DNA from: Epithemia pelagica
Taxonomy: Eukaryota; Protista; Bacillariophyta
Assembly (NCBI GenBank): GCA_946965045.2
Contig: OX337238.1
Span: 2,604,001-2,668,000, forward strand
Reading direction: 5' to 3'
DNA: 64,000 bases
Below the pieces are notes generated by a model, which saw nothing but the letters and a program-made list of their open reading frames with translations, was not told the DNA's origin and made no database searches. Numbering within the stretch: the stretch's first letter is position 1; every line of letters starts with the position of its first letter. Of the stretch, positions 1-11,830 are shown one piece after another. The translations under genes were made by a program, and so were the position numbers.

Positions 1-1322
1 GCGTTGGGGTTGTATGTGACCCGACGGAAGGCGGCACTGATATCATCGGCGCTGAGCAGTATGTCTTCCGAGGGATGGTCAATACGCAGATTGTAGATGT
101 ACCGCAAAAAGCGTAGGAAAGCCGTGCCGTAAGCCACCGCGGGGTTACAGTCATCGTCATGTCCAGCATCTGGAATTTGGGCATTGGTGTTGCCGTCATC
201 AGTGTCTGTGATTTTGGAGCTTGGATCGATGCACAAGCGGCCGGTGTCGCCGATGCGGTGGGGTTTGGGCGCTACCCAGTTAATGAGTGAAAGGAAAAGA
301 CCGGGGAGGAACCGCCAGATAATTCGGGGAAGGAAAAGATGATACTGTAGCTGTTCCTCTTTCTTGAACTTTTTGGTGATTTCCTCTAAGTTTTCTTGGA
401 CCCCGGGGTAGTTGTCAAGGAGGTTGCGTTGGGAAACGGCAACGCGACTACAGGAATAGTGGCCTGCGAGAGGGGCGCCCAGGTGAAAAAGTTGCCAAGT
501 GCGGGCATAGTCCAACCGTGGATAGTCCGGTGGGGGCTCAAAAGCTTTGACGCGGTCAATGATGTCGAAGGTGTCTGCCAGGCGTCTGTGATGATTATTG
601 TAGATTCCGCCAAGCCAGCGGTACATGTCCGCATAGACAAAGTTTGCGCGACAAAGGGCAACGGCAAGCAGAAAAGCCTTACGGAATGGAAGGGGTTGGG
701 ATTTGTCTTCGCAGGGGGGTATGCGACAGACAGCAAGAGAGGTGCCATGAGCAGCAGCAACGCGGAGACGATGATAGAAGTGGAAGCTTGGCGAGGAGGC
801 GACTAGGTTTTGTTGGTCCTGTGGGGACAAAAAATCCCATGCGTAGTGGCCGAGCAATTCAGGGGAAACAACATGGGGTGCGGTTGCCGCAAGGGGAGTG
901 CCGTCAGGAGCAGCATGGGATGTGCCGACGTTGAGACGGTCAGGACCGAAACCAATTCGTTTGCGATGGTGTGTGAACGACCAGAGAGGGAACAGGGGAA
1001 GAATTCCCCAGTTGGGCACCAAGGAGGAAGAGGCAAGGAGGAGTTGGGAGCGATCGGCGTCGGTCAAAAAGGGGTTGACGGTGGTTAACACCGTGTGCAA
1101 CGTTGGCAACTCATAGGAGACCCGAGAGGGGGCAGCACGTGGGTGAGAAGGAAATACTGGTAGTTTGGGGACAGTAGGGACAGCCTCAGTAGAGGGAGCG
1201 GGAAGGGAGAGGAGAAGATCTGCCGTAGAGGTGGGATAAAATTTCTCTGGTGAAGTGGGAGGCATTTCATCAGACCACGGCGAACGGGCGCAAGTCGAAC
1301 CTGGGCGATGATGTGCCGGTAG
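1..1322 (-). CDS. pol: Reverse transcriptase (pol) N-terminal part, open to the left window edge; absent from the ORF track
   Basis: Hand translation of 1322->2 has no stop: LPAHHRPG...MPPTSPEKF(ATG 1265)...ANFVYADMYRWLGGIY...PPDYPRLDY...GAPLAGHY...RNLLDNYPGV...GRLCIDPSSKI...DILLSADDISAAFRRVTYNP. Confidence 0.8.
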
Positions 1323-3434
1323 TCACGACGAGGGCGGGGGTTGTTGAGGGGCGTTTGGACGGTTCGGACGGTCTGAAGCCATGTGGGCTGCAAATTCCGG
1401 TGTAGGTTGGAGAAGGTGGCGAACGCGATCATGGTGACAGAACTCCCAGAGCGGTTTAAGGGAGGATTGGGGCCAGTTGGAGATAGCCTGGGGAGAAAGG
1501 CAGACGTGGTGTCGATTGCATTGCAACGGTTGGCCTTCCGAGTTTGTGCGTGAACGATGGGGACCGGTGCACCCGACAACAGAGTTCTTGTCGATGTACA
1601 TAAAGCAATATTGCTTTTGGTCGAAACGGGGAATGGTGAGGGAAGACGCGAGGTCGGCAAGGAGCTTACCTGAGTGGGTATAACGTTCCTTCCCTGCCGC
1701 GGTGAGGGTGACAAGCGGGACGAGAGCTTTTTGGCCAGGGCGACGCTGGGGTTGAGCGGAGTCAGAACGAGCACGCTTGGGCGGTGGTTGGTCGGCAGCA
1801 CGGTCAGGAGGACGGTCCGAGGGAGAGCGACGCCGTTGGGCACGATCGTAGCGTTCAAGAGGAGAACGAGAGTCACCCCGGTGATCAGGACGAGATGGTA
1901 GGAGATAGTTGGGGGTGGAGCGGCAAAACAAGGGTGACATGGAGTTGGTGTGTTGGTGGGAGAGTATTGTAGGAGCCGTAAATAATAGGGTAAAGGTGGA
2001 TCGCCAATCCAAACAGTAGGTGAGATTTGAGTCGGTTGAGTGCGGGCTCACATCGTAGATGAGAGTGCACTGGGGAACAAAGCCTTCAGGGTCTGCGGTG
2101 GCAGGGCAAGCTATTTTGGTACGATTCTGGGCGCCCCAGCGGAGGAATTGTTGAAACAGGTCACAGGTGTGATGGAGAAGGGCCTGAGACAATTGTAGCG
2201 TGTGACTGGGTTGCGAGGAAGCCAATGTCGACCATGCATCTCGAGTTTGAGCTTGATCAAACTGATGAGCTGCCCAAAGCAATTGACCGGCAAGGGGACC
2301 GCGGAGAAGAAAGGGGCTAAATCCTGGAGGGAATTGGGGGAAGGAGTCGTCGTTGGTGAGTACCGTGTTTAAGAAAAACACAATATGATGGAAGAACAGC
2401 TTAAACTGGGTGCAGGAGAGACCTTGTTGCGGGAGGCGACCCTCTGGGGACAAGGGGATGGACCATAGGAAGTGCCAAGGAGTAAGGGATAGATATAATG
2501 ACTTAGGGTCGTCGAGATGAAGAGTCTGACCTGCGTTGATTCGGAATGTTCTCAGTGCTTTACGCGGGGCTTCTGCGTGAAGGAAAGACTGAGAAAAATC
2601 GACGCGGAACGGAGCCACCGGGTATTTGGAAGCTTCGATGGCGGCGGCGAGGAGGTCAATGGCCGCTACCTCGGCGGCAGAGCTGCGATGATCAGCGCCT
2701 GCGTAGGGCAGAACTTGGCGCAGCCAATCGTTGTTGAGATGGCTGGGGGTATGGAGAAGCTCGTGGGAATAGGAGGGACGTCTCGTGGTTGTGGGCAAGT
2801 TGGGGTCAACCAAACGTAGATCAGTAGGTAGAGCAACGATGCCCAGGAAGGCCCATTGGACTACATGAGGTGGGAGTTGGTCTGTGTCCTGGAAAATAAA
2901 GCGGTCAAAAGTAAATTGACCGCGCTCTTCCATGGTGCGTCGGATGAGGGGAAGATACGCGGAGGAAGCCAAGGTGGAATGCACATATTTGAGCCTTGTG
3001 CTCGTAAACCAAGTTGGGTTGTCAACCGGGAGATACCAGGGTGAGGTAGTGGTGGAAACCAGGGGTGCGTCCCAGGCCTGACGTTGGTGCGCCAAGGGGT
3101 TGAAGGATTGGGAGTGGTAGGACTCCATGGCTGGAGAGGCTGGGTGATAATGAGTGGGTCGACGTGGTGGGTTGTGGGGTGCATGAGGAGAGGCGTTGGA
3201 GTAGGCATTGGCTGTAGAGGTGGAAGGAGATCGCTGGAGGTGGGGGGGAGGAAGGGGGGGGAGGAAATGCTCCTGTCGCGAGGGAGGACGAGGCGGAAGG
3301 TGCTGAAAGGAGGTTTGGGTGGGAAACGACGGTGGGTCCGGACCGACGAGGAGACGATTCTGATGGGGTTGAGGTGGCGGCTGCTGTGGTTCCAGCTGCT
3401 GAGGGGGTGGAGGAGCACGCTGTTGTGGTTCCAT
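1323..3434 (-). CDS. Gag-like ORF2 of the DIRS-like element (703 aa; Pro-rich N-terminus, C-terminal Cys/His finger)
   Basis: ORF track. C-terminal YCFMYIDKNSVVGCTGPHRSRTNSEGQPLQCNRHHVCL follows an Arg/Asp-rich basic patch. Ends TGA-CTA in frame with pol. Confidence 0.65.
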   Translation of the reverse strand: MEPQQRAPPPPQQLEPQQPPPQPHQNRLLVGPDPPSFPTQTSFQHLPPRPPSRQEHFLPPLPPPHLQRSPSTSTANAYSNASPHAPHNPPRRPTHYHPASPAMESYHSQSFNPLAHQRQAWDAPLVSTTTSPWYLPVDNPTWFTSTRLKYVHSTLASSAYLPLIRRTMEERGQFTFDRFIFQDTDQLPPHVVQWAFLGIVALPTDLRLVDPNLPTTTRRPSYSHELLHTPSHLNNDWLRQVLPYAGADHRSSAAEVAAIDLLAAAIEASKYPVAPFRVDFSQSFLHAEAPRKALRTFRINAGQTLHLDDPKSLYLSLTPWHFLWSIPLSPEGRLPQQGLSCTQFKLFFHHIVFFLNTVLTNDDSFPQFPPGFSPFLLRGPLAGQLLWAAHQFDQAQTRDAWSTLASSQPSHTLQLSQALLHHTCDLFQQFLRWGAQNRTKIACPATADPEGFVPQCTLIYDVSPHSTDSNLTYCLDWRSTFTLLFTAPTILSHQHTNSMSPLFCRSTPNYLLPSRPDHRGDSRSPLERYDRAQRRRSPSDRPPDRAADQPPPKRARSDSAQPQRRPGQKALVPLVTLTAAGKERYTHSGKLLADLASSLTIPRFDQKQYCFMYIDKNSVVGCTGPHRSRTNSEGQPLQCNRHHVCLSPQAISNWPQSSLKPLWEFCHHDRVRHLLQPTPEFAAHMASDRPNRPNAPQQPPPSS

Positions 3435-3590
3435 GTGCTGGGGTTGCAGAGGAGCACGAGAGACAGGGACTGGTGCAGGAAACCGTGGCGAGGGGTCCAG
3501 GGCTGCTGGTGAGGGAATGCGAGCCGTTGGAGGGTGAAAGGCTGTAGGACGACGAGAGAGGCTTTCTGCGGGAGGTTCCAGAGGGAATGG

Positions 3591-5291
3591 TCAAACTTCC
3601 GGTGTCTGGGGAGAGGAAGGAGGGTTTTTTTGCGAGGGTTTGTCCGGGGAATCGACATTCAAACGGGTAACCGTGTTGGGTTGGGGTGGGTTGAGGGACG
3701 AAGATGGTGACCGCTCTTGTGGGGTGGATATGGCGCGTTGAGCGAGATGATCGTTTGGGAGGTGATTCAAAAAATCCGGAAGGTATTTTTGGACATCAAA
3801 GGAAGAAAAGGATTTGAAACCGTAGGAGGTGGACCACGACTGTGTTTGAGGGCGAAAGAGGAAAGGAACGTATGTGTGGGTGTTGTCCACGTGAGGGATG
3901 TTTTGAGGGAGGAACAGGTCGACGTCTTGGGAGGATAGCATGGTTGCTTTCTCCCGAAAGAAAGTGAAGAATTTGGTTCGCATGGTATGGGACGGATTGT
4001 TTTGGAGGAGTGCATCCGAGAAAAGCTTGGTTGTAAGGGAGAAGAAAGGATGCACAAACAGGGCTTCATAAGGGTGGATACGAGCCGGATAAGAACGGGG
4101 AAGGTTGGTAGAGATGGGGACGTTCTTGAGGGTGGTGAGGTCGGATGCTATCTGCTTGGAAGTGTGCCAAACAGTAGCAAAGTCGTCGGCGCGTTGACTC
4201 ACGGTGAGGAGCCAATCGTTGACAAAAGGGACGTCAAGCCAAGAGAGAGTTGTTGCCAAGTCTTTGAGATGGGAAGAACGAGTGGCTGGCATCGGGTTGT
4301 AGGTTTGATTCCAACCAAGAATAGTGTTAATTAAACTGGCGGAGTCAGGAATGGAGGCAGGATCGAAAAGGAGACCAATAGGAAGATGATGATGACGAGG
4401 AAGGGGAAGGGCGGAAAGAGCAATCCAGGAGCCCTCGATAGGAGAAGTGTTCTCAACGGGAATTGTGAGAATGGGTTCGTCGACGCGATGGAGGCGCGAG
4501 AAAATTTGATGGGCATGTGGGGGGGAGTCTTGGGAGGGGATCCAAAGAGAATGCCACGGGTCGTCAGGCGAGTGGAGGCGTGACGTAGACTGTTCAAGGA
4601 TAACAGTGGAAAATAGGGCTCGGTGAGCACGGAGGGAGGCCAGTATGGAACTGGGGTGGGAAGTAATCCACGAGTAAGGGTTAAGTTGTGAAATGGATTG
4701 GGGACGGATGCCCGATTGGAAAGCGAACGCAGGGGCAATTAACGTTGTAGGAAAACGAAACTGCGAGGAGCTGATTTTCTGGGGGGTATCGGAAAATACA
4801 TGTGCTTGCAAGCCTTTTCCGTTGAAGGCAAACGCCGTGGGCCCGAGGACAACCAGGTAAGGGCCGGATGGGGGTGGGATTTTGGAGGAAAGCTTGCTGG
4901 GATCGGTGGTGGGAGCCGAGTCAAGCTGGACAACGGCTAGGAAGCCGGCAATAGTAGGTGAGTCTGCAGCCAGGGCATACTTGGCAGGGGAAGTAACTAC
5001 GGTAGCGTCGGGAGAGGAATTATTTGGCCCAAAATTCAAGGAAAGAAGATTGGCCAAAAATTCCTTCTGGATTTCCTTGGATTTTTCTTCAGGGGACAAG
5101 AAAATAAAGTCTTTAGAGTTTTGGAGATCGGTAGGGTGAAGAGGAGACATGCCGGAGAACTGATTTGGATAGGTTGTGGTGGATGCCACAGGCTTGAACA
5201 AACCAGAGGGGGAAAACGAAAGGAACGACTGGGTCGTATCGGGAGAGATTAATCCGCGAAGGGTAGGATTAATAGCGAAAGATAACGACAT
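3591..5291 (-). CDS. ORF1 of the DIRS-like element, unknown function (~566 aa from first ATG)
   Basis: Long ORF (track 3591..5354 uses TTG); first ATG at 5291. Same frame as ORF2, separated by TGA-CCA and 52 sense codons. No domain recognised. Confidence 0.6.
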   Translation of the reverse strand: MSLSFAINPTLRGLISPDTTQSFLSFSPSGLFKPVASTTTYPNQFSGMSPLHPTDLQNSKDFIFLSPEEKSKEIQKEFLANLLSLNFGPNNSSPDATVVTSPAKYALAADSPTIAGFLAVVQLDSAPTTDPSKLSSKIPPPSGPYLVVLGPTAFAFNGKGLQAHVFSDTPQKISSSQFRFPTTLIAPAFAFQSGIRPQSISQLNPYSWITSHPSSILASLRAHRALFSTVILEQSTSRLHSPDDPWHSLWIPSQDSPPHAHQIFSRLHRVDEPILTIPVENTSPIEGSWIALSALPLPRHHHLPIGLLFDPASIPDSASLINTILGWNQTYNPMPATRSSHLKDLATTLSWLDVPFVNDWLLTVSQRADDFATVWHTSKQIASDLTTLKNVPISTNLPRSYPARIHPYEALFVHPFFSLTTKLFSDALLQNNPSHTMRTKFFTFFREKATMLSSQDVDLFLPQNIPHVDNTHTYVPFLFRPQTQSWSTSYGFKSFSSFDVQKYLPDFLNHLPNDHLAQRAISTPQERSPSSSLNPPQPNTVTRLNVDSPDKPSQKNPPSSPQTPEV

Positions 5292-5386
5292 GACAAAGGA
5301 AGCAAAGGCAAAGACAAGAAAGAAAGAAGAAAGGAAGAAAAACACCAACAGCAAACTTGATAGAGATTGCGTTGCTCCAAAAACTC

Positions 5387-5455
5387 ATGCCACAGCGCCA
5401 AATTGCCAAAATTCACTCCCCATCGGAACGTTCCAAAAACTCTCTAACAACGACA
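5387..5455 (+). repeat. Copia 5' LTR remnant (last 69 bp)
   Basis: ATGCCACAGCGCC...CTAACAACGACA is identical to 11762-11830. Confidence 0.92.
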
Positions 5456-5469
5456 GGTTATGAGCCCAA
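5456..5469 (+). promoter_or_regulatory. Primer-binding site (copia-type, internal half of tRNA-iMet)
   Basis: GGTTATGAGCCCAA directly after the LTR CA; resembles the Drosophila copia PBS GGTTATGGGCCCAG. Confidence 0.75.
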
Positions 5470-5575
5470 GCGTTATCACTGGAGTCTGGTACTAATACTT
5501 TCATACTGTCTCATGTCACAGTTTCTGAGAAACAGTTTACTTAAGCCTCTAATCGTGTTGCGACAGAATGCTATT

Positions 5576-6541
5576 ATGCCTTCCGCATCAACCCGAACCC
5601 TTACCGCCTCCTTCAAAGGCAAGTGGGAGTCAACTTCTTCGGTCTCCCAAAAGACGAGAGGACATCTTTCGTGGTTCTCACAGTTTCGTTGCACGAATCC
5701 TGTTGAACGAGTTCACATCCCCTCGAAGCCTTTGACTTACCTTTTCCCTTTTCGACCTTTGACAATGACTGAAGCCGATAGCACGGAGACTGGCATTCCT
5801 GCCACCCCTGACTCGAAGAGCTCTTCCGGCGGGATGACCCCTCTCTCCACGGGTCCGTCGCCTGGCGATTCTGGATTCCTTAAGACCCCGATTCAAACTC
5901 CGACCCTCAAAGATGTGACTATGAATGGGATCACCTTTACCAAGAAGAAGACGCGTACTTTCGAGTTGGGCGCATTTGCCAAATTTCTCAGTCTCTTGGA
6001 GGCTTTCGAGAACACCGATGCACCCATTTTGTCCGACTTCATGCTCCTTCGTGAACGCGTCATCAAGAAATATAACGATCTTCTTCTTGCGAACAAGTGG
6101 CTTCCTACTACGATTGACCACGCCAGTTCGTCCTTCCAGAGCAAGAGTTCTTCTCCACAAGGCAAGTCTGGTGATTCTGGTTCTGGCGGTCGTCGCTCCT
6201 TTCTGATTGACACCACACCACCGGCTGATGGTGCAGCGAATTGGCGTCCTCACCCCGGCAACCCATCCAAAAAGCAATACTGGTGTGGTTTGTGCCCTAA
6301 TGGTCTTCCCAACGGGCTTGGTCGTTGGGGTAACCATAGCACGGACCGCCATGATCCGAACAAGGTCAAACAGCGTACTCGCACCACCGCCAACCGTACT
6401 TCTACTACACCCACTCCGACAACAACGACTGCACCCAACACTTCGACTTCATCTGTGTCCGACGACACTGCCGCCGATGATTCAAACACCGGTACTACTG
6501 CTTCCGTTGCGTTGCTCTCCTCTTTGCGGGATTTTTCTTAG
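5576..6541 (+). CDS. gag: Copia gag (start uncertain: ATG 5513, 5576 or 5765)
   Basis: In-frame ORF after the PBS with a C-terminal W..HPG..K.YWCGLC...GRWGNHSTDRH Cys/His motif; ends GAT TTT TCT TAG. Confidence 0.7.
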   Translation: MPSASTRTLTASFKGKWESTSSVSQKTRGHLSWFSQFRCTNPVERVHIPSKPLTYLFPFRPLTMTEADSTETGIPATPDSKSSSGGMTPLSTGPSPGDSGFLKTPIQTPTLKDVTMNGITFTKKKTRTFELGAFAKFLSLLEAFENTDAPILSDFMLLRERVIKKYNDLLLANKWLPTTIDHASSSFQSKSSSPQGKSGDSGSGGRRSFLIDTTPPADGAANWRPHPGNPSKKQYWCGLCPNGLPNGLGRWGNHSTDRHDPNKVKQRTRTTANRTSTTPTPTTTTAPNTSTSSVSDDTAADDSNTGTTASVALLSSLRDFS

Positions 6542-6570
6542 GGCGGACATCCCTCCAATGTTCCACTGCC
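6529..6570 (+). promoter_or_regulatory. Putative -1 ribosomal frameshift signal at gag end
   Basis: G GAT TTT heptamer in the gag frame (6529-6535), 5-nt spacer, then stem-loop GGGCGG-ACAT/ATGT-CTGCCC (6541-6570). Confidence 0.55.
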
Positions 6571-7334
6571 CTTTTACCGCTCAGATTGGAGATCTTTTTT
6601 CTTTACATATTTGTTGGATTGTTACTTGGATGATGTCCCTTTGGTTGTCGATGTTGGCTGCTTCGTGTTTTGGTTTTGACTCTTTACCGGTTTACTGTTT
6701 CCCTTTTACTTGGCCGTGTGTATACTCTTTCTGCTCGCGCTTTTACGTTTTCTTCAAGATTCCTTGGTGGCAATTTCAATGGTCCTTCGGTCGTCTCAGT
6801 TGTCGGTTGTCGCGCTCTCACGTATTCGGTTCCTTCTTCTGGCTCTGGTATCTCTTCTGTGGCGTCTTCGATTCTACGTTGATTGTTGGTTGTCACGCTT
6901 TGCGACTTGGTCGGCACTCCTCTCCCTTACTGGATCATTTGGATAAACTTGACTCGGACTCGCTTTTACCCACTCGCTTCCCTCCCAGTGGTTTTGATTC
7001 GCGTCTTGGTTTGGGTGCTCATGTTGTCAACTTGACCTCTTTGTCTCGGCTGATTCTCCACCACCGACTGACTGTGTTTGGATCTGCTGCAGATCCGCTC
7101 CGTACTCCGTTTCTACCTACACGGCTCTGGGGCGAGAATTTTGGTCGACGACGACGCAGACGATTCCAGCCATCGACTGACCTCTACCTTAGCTACCTCA
7201 AGGGACTCGATGATGACAGTATTTCCAACTTAGTCTTGATGGCGTTCCTAACACCTGTTGACGATTGTTGCTTTTGGGATCCTGTGTTATGGGACAAGTT
7301 TTCGGACGGACTGGGATTCGAGCTCTAACCACCT

Positions 7335-10300
7335 TTGAACACGTTGTCACCTCTTTGGACACCAACTTACGATATCTCACCCATCTTAGACTACTGGTAC
7401 GACTCTACCTTCGTACGACACCAAGCTGCACACGACCGTCACGCTAACGATCTTCGACTCGGAGAATTGGGACACGACTTTAGTAACTTGCTGCGTTGCT
7501 CGAGCGAGACTGTACGACAAACTTGTCATCATACTGCCTTCCGATTCGATCCTACCGTCTTTGCCAACACGAACAAAGACCAGACACGTAAAGAAGACCC
7601 TTTACTTTCAGTGATCTTGGACACAGGAGCTTCACACGGGCTGACCATGAGTGCCGAAGACTTAATTGAACTTACATATGGTAACTTCGGGTCAATGTCA
7701 ACCGCAGCGTCAAACAACCAGTTTCCTATCATTGGATCCGGTATCGTTGCATACGACGCAATAAGCGAAAACGGAGAAATTCAACGATGGACTTACCCAG
7801 CCAATCTCTGTCAAGCGGCCGGAACTCGACTCTGCTCTCCTCAAGTCTGCGCTGACTACCTGAATCTAGATCGACGATATCCCAGTTTTGAAAGCAACCA
7901 TGTTTTTGCAAGTCTCCAAACAAGTTCCAAAACTGATCGCCTTACCGTACCAATCGATCATGAAACAAATCTCCCGATCGTGAAGGTCAAGCATCACCGT
8001 CCTGAAAAACACACGAGGAAACGGCCTTCGCACTGTCGATGTGGTTCGACTCGATGGTGTCGATGCGTCTCAGCTGAGTCCATGAGCGTACCATCTCAAA
8101 CGATTAGTCAGATGCTGAACGCACACCCAATTCCAGACTTGATGACTGACGAAAATCGAAATTTATCCAAGGCACAACGGCAATTGCTTCTGGATCATCA
8201 ACGAATGGGTCACATCGGAATGCGACATGTACAACGTCTTTATTCTCCTCTCGGGTCCGGTGCACCGACTACACACAACGAAAATGGTGACTCATGTCTG
8301 TTACCACGTTTCCAATCGTCCACCAGCTGCGAGATTCCCAAATGTGAAGCATGTCTTTTAGCTAAGGCTCGACGTCGTCCCACACGCGCAACAACAAAAG
8401 TTCCAAACAAGCAGAGTCGACCGATACCTCCCACAACGGACTTGAAACCAGGGGATCTCGTCTCAATCGATCATTTCGAATCCTCGGTACGCGGTAGATT
8501 GTTGCATACACGCGGGCGAGAATTGCCACAACATCGATATTGCGGTGGAAGTCTGTTCTATGACCATGCATCTCAGGCCATCTTCACATACCCCCAGGTC
8601 TCTTTAGCCAGTAGCGATACCATTCGCTCGAAAGAGTCCTTTGAAGATCTCGTCCGGCAGTTGGGCCACTCAGTTCGTCACTACCACACTGACAATGGTG
8701 TCTTTACGTCGGACGCTTTCCGTCAGTCACTCAGTCAAGATCGCAACCAGCACCGCCCTTTGCACACTCGATCCGGTACAGGCGCCCACCATCAAAATGG
8801 GAATGCACAGCGAGGCATTCAAACCGTCACCCACATGGCCCGAACGATGATGCTGCAGTGTCATCTCCGTTGGCCTGAAGCCTTTTGTCCGACACTTTGG
8901 CCTATGGCTCTTTCCTACGCCACGTGGATCTACAATCATGTCCCTTCCGACGCAACGACCTTATCACCGATGGAACGCTTCACCGGAAGCAAGATGAACT
9001 GTGAGTATCTCCGACGACTGCGAGTGTGTTGTCCGGCGTATGTGCTTCACGCTCGTCTCCAAGATGGGAAGAAGCTGCCCAAATGGAATTCCCGAGCTAA
9101 ACGCGGACAGTTTCTTGGTTTTTCGCCGTCTCATTCGACCACGATTGGACTCATCCGCAACTTGGAAACGAACAACATCACTCCACAATTTCATGTGGCA
9201 TACGACAAACAGTTCCACACTGTGGCTAGCTCGTGGACACCGCCGCCGACCGACTCTCCGTTGCCCGACCTTTTCACTTGTGATTTCTACTTGGACGGCT
9301 ATGACGAGACGCTCGACGGCCCCTTGCCCGAGCTTGACTCGGAATGGTCTCTCGACGACGAACCATCTGCTCCTGCTTCGAGGCCACCTCCGATCCGTCC
9401 TGATGTTCCTTCGATTCCCACCATGCCGGAGGGCGAGAACGCACCACCCGCTTCTCCGTCCAGTCCACACTTACCGCACTTCCCACCTGTGAGCACTCCT
9501 GCCCGCGAACTTTCCCAAGAGCCGGGCGAGCCACCGTTGGACGTCCCTCTTGCACCAGACTTCGAAGAACCGGGCGAGCCACTTTTGGAGCCATCTGTCG
9601 ACGAACCGGGCGAGCCACCGTTGAATCCACCCGCTGACGAACCGGGCGAGCCACTGTTGGACCAATCTCCCGTTCGTCCACGTCGTCAACGCCATGCTCC
9701 ACGCCGTCTCCCCGACCCTGATCGACACGCACGTTTCCAACTGCCACCAACTGAAAGCCAATGGGACAACACAACGCGAAGCTTGAACCACTCTCCGCAT
9801 TGTCTTGGATTTCACATGAACCAACTCGACTGGACAGTGCCTCCAGATCCTACCTCTGACACTGTGGCAGCTCATTTCGAACAGGTGTATCACCGACAAG
9901 CAACAAGTACTCTCGGGTTGATTGATGAGTGGGACCCCCGTTTTCTCGCGGCCAAAGCCTTCGACGCCGACGCACCCTCAGTCTTTGAAGTCCGTCACAT
10001 GTGCGAAGAGGAACGAACCAAGTGGTACATTGCTATGGACAAAGAACTAAATGAACTCGAAGCGAAAGGAACTTTCCGTCTGGTCCCACGTTCCAAGGCA
10101 GCCGGCAAAGAAATCGTCGATACCATGTGGACGCTTAAACGCAAACGTCTTCCTGACGGCACCATCTCACGTTACAAAGCGAGACTTGTCGTCCGCGGTG
10201 ACCAACAAAAGGCAACATTCGACAAGGAGGACACTTTCGCACCAGTCATCGACTGGCCAGCCGTCAGACTCATGCTCATCCTCTCACTCCAACATAACCT

Positions 10301-11543
10301 TACCACAGTCTCGATCGACTTCAAAAATGCCTTCGTTCAGTCCAGCTTGCCGGAACCCATCTTTGTGAACCTACCAAAAGGATACGGCGGAGGCCACACA
10401 GACCGAATACTCGAAGTAACCAAGAGCCTATACGGCGACTGCAGAGCCCCACGGCTCTGGTATGACCATCTCAAGGCCCAACTATCGAAGCTCGGACTGA
10501 AACCCGACGGGTCCGACCCATGCCTGTTCTGTAAAGAAAACGTGGTGTTAGTCACGTATGTCGACGACGCCATCATCTGCGGCACGGACCAAGACGCTGT
10601 CAATGAGATTTTGAACGGACTTAAAAAGTTAGACATGGACTTCGATCATCTCGGCGACTTACCCACTTACCTGGGTGTGCAAATTACCCGCCATGAGGAT
10701 GGCAGCATGGAGTTGAAACAACCTCACTTGACCGAAAGCATCATTGCAGCGCTGGGACTGACCGACAGTCGGGCAAAGGGAACACCAGCCTCTCGCACAA
10801 TCGGTAAGGAGACAGACAAGCCACCTCTTGACGAAGGGTTCAACTACCGCTCCGTGGTGGGCATGTTATTATGCTTGGGCAATAACACACGCCCAGATTG
10901 CGCCTTCGCTATACACCAAGCGGCACGGTTCAGTAATAACCCTCGCCAACCCCACGGCAAAGCCCTGAAACGAATTGGCCGCTATCTACAAGGCACCCAA
11001 GACAAAGGCCTCATCTTGCATCCATCAAAGGACATGACGTTGAATTGTTACGTGGATGCGGACTTCGCTGGAATCTGGGGCAACGAAGACCCTCATGACT
11101 CAACATCCGTGCGTTCACGCACCGGATTTATCATCACACTCGGAGACTCACCGGTGACATGGTCCAGCAAGCTTCAGACCGAAATAGCACTCTCAACGAT
11201 GGAAGCGGAATACATTGCCGCAAGCACAAGCATGAGAACCTTGTTACCATTGCGACGACAACTCTTAAAACTCACCCAGTTGCCCGACACATCCATCGTA
11301 AGCATTGTTTGGGAAGACAACCAAGCCGCCCTGAATCTCTCCACCAAAGATCCACCTCGCATGACACCGCGGTCCAAACATATCGCAATCAAATATCACT
11401 GGCTCAGAGAGAAACTATCACCAGGCAAACATGGAATCAAGATGCGCCCAATCGCCACAGACGATCAACTTGGCGATTGTTTCACGAAACCCCTCGAACT
11501 CGGACCTTTCGAAACCGCACGGAAGAAGATCCTCGGCTGGTAA
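7335..11543 (+). CDS. pol: Copia pol polyprotein (protease, GAG-pre-integrase, integrase, RT, RNase H); integrase catalytic Glu appears mutated
   Basis: LDTGAS protease; HQRMGH...CEAC zinc finger; DLVSIDHF...TDNG...QNGNAQRGI (Q where E is expected); RYKARLVVRG, DFKNAFVQ, YVDD; YVDADFAG...LSTMEAEY...WEDNQAA...DCFTKPL. Confidence 0.97.
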   Translation: MNTLSPLWTPTYDISPILDYWYDSTFVRHQAAHDRHANDLRLGELGHDFSNLLRCSSETVRQTCHHTAFRFDPTVFANTNKDQTRKEDPLLSVILDTGASHGLTMSAEDLIELTYGNFGSMSTAASNNQFPIIGSGIVAYDAISENGEIQRWTYPANLCQAAGTRLCSPQVCADYLNLDRRYPSFESNHVFASLQTSSKTDRLTVPIDHETNLPIVKVKHHRPEKHTRKRPSHCRCGSTRWCRCVSAESMSVPSQTISQMLNAHPIPDLMTDENRNLSKAQRQLLLDHQRMGHIGMRHVQRLYSPLGSGAPTTHNENGDSCLLPRFQSSTSCEIPKCEACLLAKARRRPTRATTKVPNKQSRPIPPTTDLKPGDLVSIDHFESSVRGRLLHTRGRELPQHRYCGGSLFYDHASQAIFTYPQVSLASSDTIRSKESFEDLVRQLGHSVRHYHTDNGVFTSDAFRQSLSQDRNQHRPLHTRSGTGAHHQNGNAQRGIQTVTHMARTMMLQCHLRWPEAFCPTLWPMALSYATWIYNHVPSDATTLSPMERFTGSKMNCEYLRRLRVCCPAYVLHARLQDGKKLPKWNSRAKRGQFLGFSPSHSTTIGLIRNLETNNITPQFHVAYDKQFHTVASSWTPPPTDSPLPDLFTCDFYLDGYDETLDGPLPELDSEWSLDDEPSAPASRPPPIRPDVPSIPTMPEGENAPPASPSSPHLPHFPPVSTPARELSQEPGEPPLDVPLAPDFEEPGEPLLEPSVDEPGEPPLNPPADEPGEPLLDQSPVRPRRQRHAPRRLPDPDRHARFQLPPTESQWDNTTRSLNHSPHCLGFHMNQLDWTVPPDPTSDTVAAHFEQVYHRQATSTLGLIDEWDPRFLAAKAFDADAPSVFEVRHMCEEERTKWYIAMDKELNELEAKGTFRLVPRSKAAGKEIVDTMWTLKRKRLPDGTISRYKARLVVRGDQQKATFDKEDTFAPVIDWPAVRLMLILSLQHNLTTVSIDFKNAFVQSSLPEPIFVNLPKGYGGGHTDRILEVTKSLYGDCRAPRLWYDHLKAQLSKLGLKPDGSDPCLFCKENVVLVTYVDDAIICGTDQDAVNEILNGLKKLDMDFDHLGDLPTYLGVQITRHEDGSMELKQPHLTESIIAALGLTDSRAKGTPASRTIGKETDKPPLDEGFNYRSVVGMLLCLGNNTRPDCAFAIHQAARFSNNPRQPHGKALKRIGRYLQGTQDKGLILHPSKDMTLNCYVDADFAGIWGNEDPHDSTSVRSRTGFIITLGDSPVTWSSKLQTEIALSTMEAEYIAASTSMRTLLPLRRQLLKLTQLPDTSIVSIVWEDNQAALNLSTKDPPRMTPRSKHIAIKYHWLREKLSPGKHGIKMRPIATDDQLGDCFTKPLELGPFETARKKILGW
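9518..9670 (+). repeat. Four imperfect in-frame repeats encoding EPGEP(P/L)L in the INT-RT linker
   Basis: GA(A/G)CCGGGCGAGCCAC occurs four times at ~36-48 bp spacing. Confidence 0.85.
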
Positions 11544-11555
11544 CTTGGCTCCGTC

Positions 11556-11564
11556 GAGGGCGAG
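11556..11564 (+). promoter_or_regulatory. Polypurine tract
   Basis: GAGGGCGAG immediately before TGTCAC, the LTR start. Confidence 0.75.
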
Positions 11565-11830
11565 TGTCACGGTACGACAAAGAACCGCCTCCTTTCATTC
11601 CAATCCAACTCACCAAAATTTATCGCACCAAGAGATCGACCTCACCAAATCACCTTAGTTTAGCAAACATAACTTTCAGAACAACAAAATTTACATACAA
11701 CACAATGATTCACCTTTACACGCACCTCGACAATGGCGTACGGAACATTCGGAAATTTGGAATGCCACAGCGCCAAATTGCCAAAATTCACTCCCCATCG
11801 GAACGTTCCAAAAACTCTCTAACAACGACA
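11565..11830 (+). repeat. Copia 3' LTR (266 bp, TG...CA)
   Basis: Starts TGTCACGG after the PPT and ends AACGACA, the same end as the 5' remnant. Confidence 0.9.

Follow-up and report, generated by a model that had tools for sequence, protein, structure and literature searches.

A conserved in-frame UGA between ORF1 and pol is a candidate readthrough site in a divergent Ngaro-like retrotransposon of the diatom Epithemia pelagica

Stop codon readthrough that is driven by a UGA-C or UGA-CUA context is established at the nsP3/nsP4 junction of alphaviruses, in the type II motifs of plant viruses and in mammalian UGA-CUAG genes. Among retroelements, Moloney murine leukaemia virus (MLV) has its structural and enzymatic open reading frames (ORFs) in the same frame with just one conserved stop between them, as gag-UAG-pol (PMC4178896). 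Ngaro elements, which are tyrosine-recombinase retrotransposons, are defined by split direct repeats with the layout A1-[ORFs]-B1A2B2 (PMC8547959), and the Ngaro of the stramenopile Cafeteria burkhardae has this layout together with a gag-like ORF, a reverse transcriptase (RT)/RNase H ORF and a tyrosine recombinase (YR) ORF with HxxR and a catalytic tyrosine, in that order (PMC8547959). A search of the literature turned up no account of gag-pol stop readthrough in any DIRS or Ngaro element, although such absence is weak evidence. Here we analysed a retrotransposon at the left edge of a 64,000-nucleotide stretch of the Epithemia pelagica genome (the window; contig OX337238.1, C11:2604001-2668000), adding the DNA to the left of the window (L029) to reach the 3' half of the element. 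Placed by its repeat layout and ORF order, it is a divergent Ngaro-like tyrosine-recombinase retrotransposon of the DIRS order, in which a single UGA readthrough would be the best-supported mechanism for making pol.

On the minus strand, positions 5291 to 3 of the window form 1,763 codons that are interrupted by exactly two stops, as seen by direct translation: one TGA lies at 3593-3591, before CCA, and the other at 1325-1323, before CTA. All 52 codons from the first stop to the ATG at 3434 are sense codons. The frame remains open beyond the window edge until a third TGA, giving a total of 2,292 codons including the ATG at 5291; TGA is absent elsewhere in this frame, and it terminates pol in the window family. 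The original prediction, which read this frame as ORF1, ORF2 and an RT ORF expressed by tandem readthrough of both stops, was accurate in its coordinates, its codons and the all-sense stretch between the ORF1 stop and the ORF2 ATG. The main features are as follows.

1320 to 1325, minus strand: in-frame TGA-CTA at the ORF1/pol junction, the candidate readthrough site (11/11 copies; homologous in-frame TGA in 8 other lineages).
1 to 1322, minus strand: first 440 of the 969 codons of pol, which continues for 1,585 bp to the left of the window.
1326 to 5291, minus strand: ORF1, 1,322 codons in intact copies, comprising what had been called ORF1, the linker and ORF2 (uninterrupted in five copies).
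3591 to 3593, minus strand: private nonsense mutation CGA>TGA (CGA in 10 other copies and in the contigs of runs X1-X3).

A census of the 60.5-Mb genome (23 contigs) yielded 11 copies including that of the window, with identities of 97.5-99.6%. The copies were compared pairwise, and the tblastn query had the junction stop written as X. Among copies, the ratio of non-synonymous to synonymous polymorphism (pN/pS) was 0.07-0.15 in pol, 0.07-0.27 in YR, 0.09-0.29 in the C-terminal half of ORF1 and 0.09-0.46 in its N-terminal half. By this measure, also summarized as 0.07-0.35 for all parts of the frame, the openness of the frame is far beyond chance.

The second stop, TGA-CTA at 1325-1323, is present in 11/11 copies, which differ at no more than 5-10% of synonymous sites. 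As pN/pS is low among them (about 0.1 in pol past the stop), most of their divergence arose on active lineages, under selection, in which the TGA was already present. The genome also contains two diverged families, with about 60% (L015) and about 47% (L028) amino acid identity, that keep an in-frame TGA-C in a proline-rich linker that cannot otherwise be aligned; upstream of it, each family carries a decay lesion of its own, in one case a T7 homopolymer and in the other an 8-bp duplication. With pol as the query, a word search gave 27 relatives, all of them unnamed and lacking a Pfam domain. The junction was scored in 14 lineages, namely the window family, L015, L028 and contigs of relatives from other assemblies, with the distant paralogues at C7:3209079 and on C18 left out of the comparison. 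Six lineages from other assemblies have the in-frame TGA, at 35-60% identity in pol. The junctions, each with the triplet that follows a single TGA, were as follows.

Window family, L028 and L048: in frame, single TGA, CTA.
L015: in frame, single TGA, CCC.
L045: in frame, single TGA, CGC.
L060: in frame, single TGA, CTC.
L050: in frame, single TGA, AGG.
L052: in frame, single TGA, GTT.
L054: in frame, single TGA, AGC.
L053: in frame, TAG with a second stop 6 codons later.
L051, L046, L056 and L059: out of frame, with TAA or TAG at the end of ORF1.

Thus, TGA is the stop at 9/9 single-stop in-frame junctions and at 0/4 out-of-frame junctions (Fisher p=0.005), and pol is in frame with ORF1 in 10/14 lineages, as compared with the one-third expected (p=0.004), although both p-values ignore the kinship of the lineages and hence overstate their independence. 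In the pol tree, in-frame TGA lies on both sides of the midpoint root; out-of-frame lineages are scattered, and two are sister to in-frame ones. The position of the stop within the linker shifts between lineages, and exactly one TGA is retained. In L015 and L050, a conserved N-terminal motif of pol, (F/W)YPxS..DL..LP, follows the TGA but precedes the first in-frame ATG, which in L050 comes as late as 257 codons past the TGA. The original prediction of a credible readthrough site where the gag-position ORF meets the RT ORF is therefore supported by comparison, as TGA and frame were kept in 11/11 copies and in 8 other lineages. Its further expectation that both stops would be kept as TGA-C held in part: at the second stop TGA is kept, with C at position +4 in 6/9 in-frame lineages, and the first stop is not kept. 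These results suggest that the second TGA is ancestral and has been kept under selection, and they support a clade of YR retroelements with a conserved single UGA between ORF1 and pol.

If the UGA is read through, most ribosomes would terminate at the TGA at 1325-1323 and release the ORF1 protein alone, and a small fraction would accept a near-cognate tRNA at the UGA and go on to make an ORF1-Pol fusion. By analogy with gammaretroviral Gag and Gag-Pol, the leaky UGA would then set a high ratio of structural protein to enzyme.

Several observations weigh against readthrough, in addition to the kinship behind the p-values above. None of the RNA runs contains the element. Folding of 120 nt 3' of the TGA in 8 lineages, with pseudoknots left out, gave no sign of a stable or conserved RNA structure (z-scores from -1.7 to +1.7), and searching the whole element against Rfam gave no match, hence no selenocysteine insertion sequence (SECIS) or known recoding element. 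The C at +4 in 6/9 in-frame lineages is not a significant excess (p=0.08 given a background of 38% C), and UGA-CUA occurs in 3/9. In four lineages pol is out of frame, in two of them without overlap, so relatives can express pol in another way; and in the window family an ATG lies 20 codons past the second stop, which makes independent initiation possible there. One alternative is therefore that pol is translated apart from ORF1, by reinitiation, from an internal or non-AUG start or by way of a spliced or subgenomic RNA; the TGA would then be a plain terminator of ORF1, and the shared frame would simply be inherited. The four out-of-frame lineages among the 14, the nearby ATG and the lack of a 3' structure signal all speak for it, as does the YR ORF, which has no usable ATG and hints at unconventional expression generally. 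However, this explanation leaves unaccounted for why, in 9 lineages with linkers rich in insertions and deletions, the pol frame is open directly past the stop, why residues upstream of the first ATG are conserved in L015 and L050 and why in-frame lineages use TGA exclusively and out-of-frame ones TAA or TAG. We consider it unlikely, while regarding it as a serious competitor. Much less plausible is that TGA is not a stop at all, owing to a variant genetic code of the host or to selenocysteine. It is the sole codon at in-frame single-stop junctions, as this would predict, but the approximately 2,800 codons of ORF1, pol and YR contain no other in-frame TGA, TGA terminates pol in the window family, L045 and L050, and neither SECIS nor any other Rfam family matched; we hold this to be very improbable. 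The same low standing applies to passive copying of an inactivating mutation inherited by a dead family. All copies do descend from a recent common ancestor, in keeping with their 97.5-99.6% identity, but past the stop, pol and YR both have a pN/pS of about 0.1, and the arrangement recurs in other assemblies in lineages of just 35-60% identity.

Tandem readthrough, with both TGAs programmed and graded output of ORF1, ORF1-gag and ORF1-gag-pol, was suggested by the two TGA-C stops in one frame of the window copy. The codon at 3593-3591 is CGA (Arg) in 10/10 other copies and TGA in the window copy alone. In three public runs of this organism (X1-X3; library type unspecified, with no strand, level or splice information and no joints seen), the contigs have G at plus-strand position 3593, which again gives CGA, and show no difference at 1323-1325. 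As all other copies and the public contigs have CGA, the first stop is private. The change is a C>T transition at a CpG, and 7 of the 19 private substitutions of the window copy are CpG transitions. No relative has a stop at this site, ORF1 being continuous in 8 lineages, and the window copy is 5'-truncated, lacking the first 97 bp of the 140-bp repeat A1, which other copies carry upstream; the missing 97 bp were also absent from the rest of the window. The private stop and the missing part of A1 together mean that the window copy is dead and irregular. The first TGA is a private nonsense mutation in a dead copy and has no function. The sense codon CGA in all other copies refutes tandem readthrough, to which we leave next to no probability, and the argument that a stop in a proline-rich linker at a domain boundary is not a random mutation fails for the first stop, which is exactly that. 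A stop in the proline-rich linker of a single copy should thus be compared with sister copies before recoding is invoked. UGA readthrough at the second stop is, by comparative evidence, a reasonably probable route to pol. The whole is best explained, at a similar level of confidence, by a decayed copy of a Ngaro-like element in which the first stop is private and the second is selected, with UGA readthrough making pol.

The anatomy of the element and the private status of the first stop are the firmest of our results, and we regard them as nearly certain. The element is about 10.4 kb long, with bounds set by comparing copies. Its 5' end is A1, a repeat of 140 bp, and its 3' end consists, in order, of B1 (174 bp), A2 (140 bp), a 16-bp spacer and B2 (174 bp). 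The last letters of B1, ...GGATTG, run straight into TGTGCGTC..., and these are the 3' and 5' termini of the element, so that B1|A2 reproduces the junction of the 3' end with the 5' end. The resulting layout, A1-[ORFs]-B1A2B2, is that of split direct repeats; in full, it reads A1, ORF1, TGA, pol, YR (in the -1 frame and overlapping the 3' end of pol), about 1.7 kb, and B1-A2-B2. The flanks of full-length copies contain no matching short repeat that would indicate a target-site duplication, and the truncated window copy has a 5-bp match, GGCAT, at its irregular ends. With RT/RNase H, YR and split direct repeats found and no target-site duplication, the prediction of a retroelement of the DIRS order holds. 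Positions 1-5386 of the window (minus strand) are the 5' half of one decayed, irregular, 5'-truncated copy. Its 5' end and immediate surroundings are laid out as follows.

5292 to 5343, minus strand: 5' untranslated leader from A1 to the ORF1 ATG (read from the sequence; ATG kept in 11/11 copies).
5344 to 5386, minus strand: last 43 bp of the terminal repeat A1 (self-BLAST and copy BLAST; reference 1515-1557 equals reference 11547-11589, in A2).
5387 to 5456, minus strand: 70-bp repeat of a neighbouring repeated unit, outside the element, abutting its truncated 5' end and recurring at 11762-11830.

The neighbouring unit, at 5387-11830 of the window, adjoins the element, is about 6.4 kb long and is bounded by the 70-bp direct repeat. 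It has a second copy, 99% identical, at C11:3289063-3296218, as well as many relatives at 65-75%. The sequence that follows the upstream 70-bp repeat of the unit (11762-11830) is the same as the 3' flank of the retrotransposon, and the element therefore sits at the junction between repeat and interior of a duplicated unit. Separately, two copies of the element, at C6:1834000-1848856 and C7:2613000-2630000, stop right after B1, without A2-B2. This is the form expected of a circle opened at the B|A junction, and these copies may bear on the mechanism of integration.

Extending the sequence to the left, as the original prediction had proposed, revealed both the RNase H motifs and the YR ORF. In pol, the invariant RT residues are D426/D427 of motif A (DD..AF) and F543-V-D-D546 of motif C (FVDD), and the RNase H motifs comprise D743, E802, D834 and H877..N883..D887 (D-E-D plus H..N..AD..SR). 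The first of these motifs lies at the very edge of the window.

18 to 59, minus strand: RT motif A, LLSADDISAAF (from translation).

Neither pieces of the pol ORF nor 15 pol homologues gave a significant match in Pfam, and a pol sequence profile had no match in the PDB. By contrast, an AF2 model of pol (pLDDT 61) had cauliflower mosaic virus RT as its top Foldseek match (E 1.5e-4), along with Ty3, foamy virus and MLV RT and RNase H1. The label of RT ORF is thus not borne out by Pfam but is upheld by catalytic motifs and fold search, and pol is predicted to be an RT and RNase H of the LTR-retroelement type, too divergent for Pfam. Pol ends 78 residues after the HxxxxxNxxAD motif of RNase H and therefore has no methyltransferase domain. 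No protease family was matched in a Pfam scan in which no part of the element matched any family. Upstream of the RT fingers, residues 1-300 of pol (window 423-1322, minus strand) contain a block, Y183..R299, that is kept in 15/15 homologues and is modelled with low confidence.

ORF1 is one open frame of 1,322-1,325 codons in five intact copies (c11b, c4a, c5, c6 and c7a). It is homologous over its full length in 8 lineages and spans 1,100-1,370 amino acids across the clade. The approximately 566-residue extra N-terminal domain that had been proposed as a separate ORF is instead where a single giant ORF1 begins, and it is conserved as such in these 8 lineages. Near the C terminus lies a cysteine/histidine motif.

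1506 to 1607, minus strand: CCCH-type motif C-x11-C-x16-C-x3-H near the ORF1 C terminus (invariant residues, translation checked).

Its residues C662, C674, C691 and H695 are invariant in 9 lineages; in 12 lineages, the three cysteines are invariant and the histidine nearly so. This motif is likely a nucleic-acid-binding zinc finger. Pieces of ORF1 had no significant match in Pfam, ESM Atlas look-alikes for its two halves gave nothing usable and no PDB fold matched it. An AF2 model of the C-terminal half (pLDDT 71) contains a confident helical domain; the structure prediction that had been proposed for ORF1 ended there without a fold match, as Foldseek returned no PDB entry with E<1 and the best VIA score was a Z of 4.1, to generic helical bundles. 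A capsid-like Gag fold was considered for ORF1 and is unsupported, with no Foldseek, VIA or Pfam match. We call ORF1 gag-like from its position and its CCCH finger alone.

The third ORF lies entirely to the left of the window.

L029:5391-6917, equal to C11:2601391-2602917, minus strand: YR ORF, in the -1 frame relative to pol.

Residues R254, K325, H414-x-x-R417, W440 and Y448 of this ORF are invariant in 9 lineages. The only PDB matches of a YR profile were Cre and the Cre-derived Tre recombinase, across HxxR..W..Y (E 0.015). Phage_integrase of Pfam appeared weakly in 4/9 YR members, and the 9 YR homologues had nothing significant in Pfam. Judged by these motifs, the third ORF is a predicted tyrosine recombinase that takes the place of a DDE integrase. 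It overlaps the 3' end of pol by 320-940 nt in 12/12 lineages, and in the window family its first ATG lies after the catalytic arginine of box I. A canonical X_XXY_YYZ slippery heptamer was sought in the overlap; there is none in the window family, and none is conserved. It is possible, albeit doubtful, that the whole element is decoded from one RNA, by UGA readthrough from ORF1 into pol and then by a -1 shift into YR, yielding nested polyproteins. If this were true, two successive recodings would mark a deep clade of YR retroelements that has gone unannotated in diatoms and other marine protists and of which the RT, RNase H and YR all escape Pfam.

Two further observations concern the 3' region and the junction of relatives. 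Between YR and B1, two antisense ORFs at L029:3743-5322 (plus strand) encode coiled-coil-like proteins of 334 and 192 amino acids and overlap by ATGA; they had no match in Pfam. The pair is intact in 7 copies, with pN/pS of 0.2-0.5 and 0.2-0.8, as compared with 0.5-0.8 for the sense-strand ORF in the same DNA, and the antisense strand may be the coding one in this region. In two related lineages known from metagenome contigs (L046 and L056-L058), ORF1 ends in TAG or TAA and pol begins in another frame 12-31 nt later, without overlap. One such lineage is probably intact, as it is identical in three separate metagenomes.

How YR retrotransposons set the ratio of structural protein to polymerase to recombinase is essentially unstudied, and a UGA kept at 35-60% identity provides a site in a diatom at which recoding can be tested directly. 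A whole branch of retroelements is overlooked here by standard domain models, which matters for the annotation of transposons in protist genomes. In comparison with the Ngaro of C. burkhardae (PMC8547959), our element has the same split direct repeats, order of ORFs and recombinase motifs, and both lack a methyltransferase domain and a target-site duplication. It differs in its size of about 10.4 kb, as compared with about 6 kb (PMC8547959), in its ORF1 of 1,100-1,370 amino acids with a CCCH finger and in having ORF1 and pol in frame across a conserved UGA. Moreover, PF00078, PF17919 and PF00589 detect the Cafeteria Ngaro (PMC8547959), whereas the RT, RNase H and YR described here fail them. 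As in Moloney MLV (PMC4178896), structural and enzymatic ORFs share one frame with a single conserved stop, and a fusion would be made at a low ratio; however, the stop is UGA here and UAG there, folding without pseudoknots gave no signal of a downstream structure and no protease for the fusion is evident. DIRS-1 and PAT-like elements resemble it in combining an LTR-type RT with a tyrosine recombinase in overlapping ORFs. By contrast, the terminal repeats of DIRS-1 are inverted, and it carries an internal complementary region as well as a methyltransferase domain after RNase H, whereas our element has split direct repeats and no such domain after RNase H. With respect to readthrough driven by UGA-C, three in-frame lineages depart from the known systems in having UGA-A or UGA-G, and C at +4 is not significantly enriched over the C-rich background (p=0.08). 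Nevertheless, the window family, L028 and L048 carry UGA-CUA and 6/9 in-frame lineages UGA-C, and the element resembles the UGA-CUA systems in seemingly not requiring strong 3' structure.

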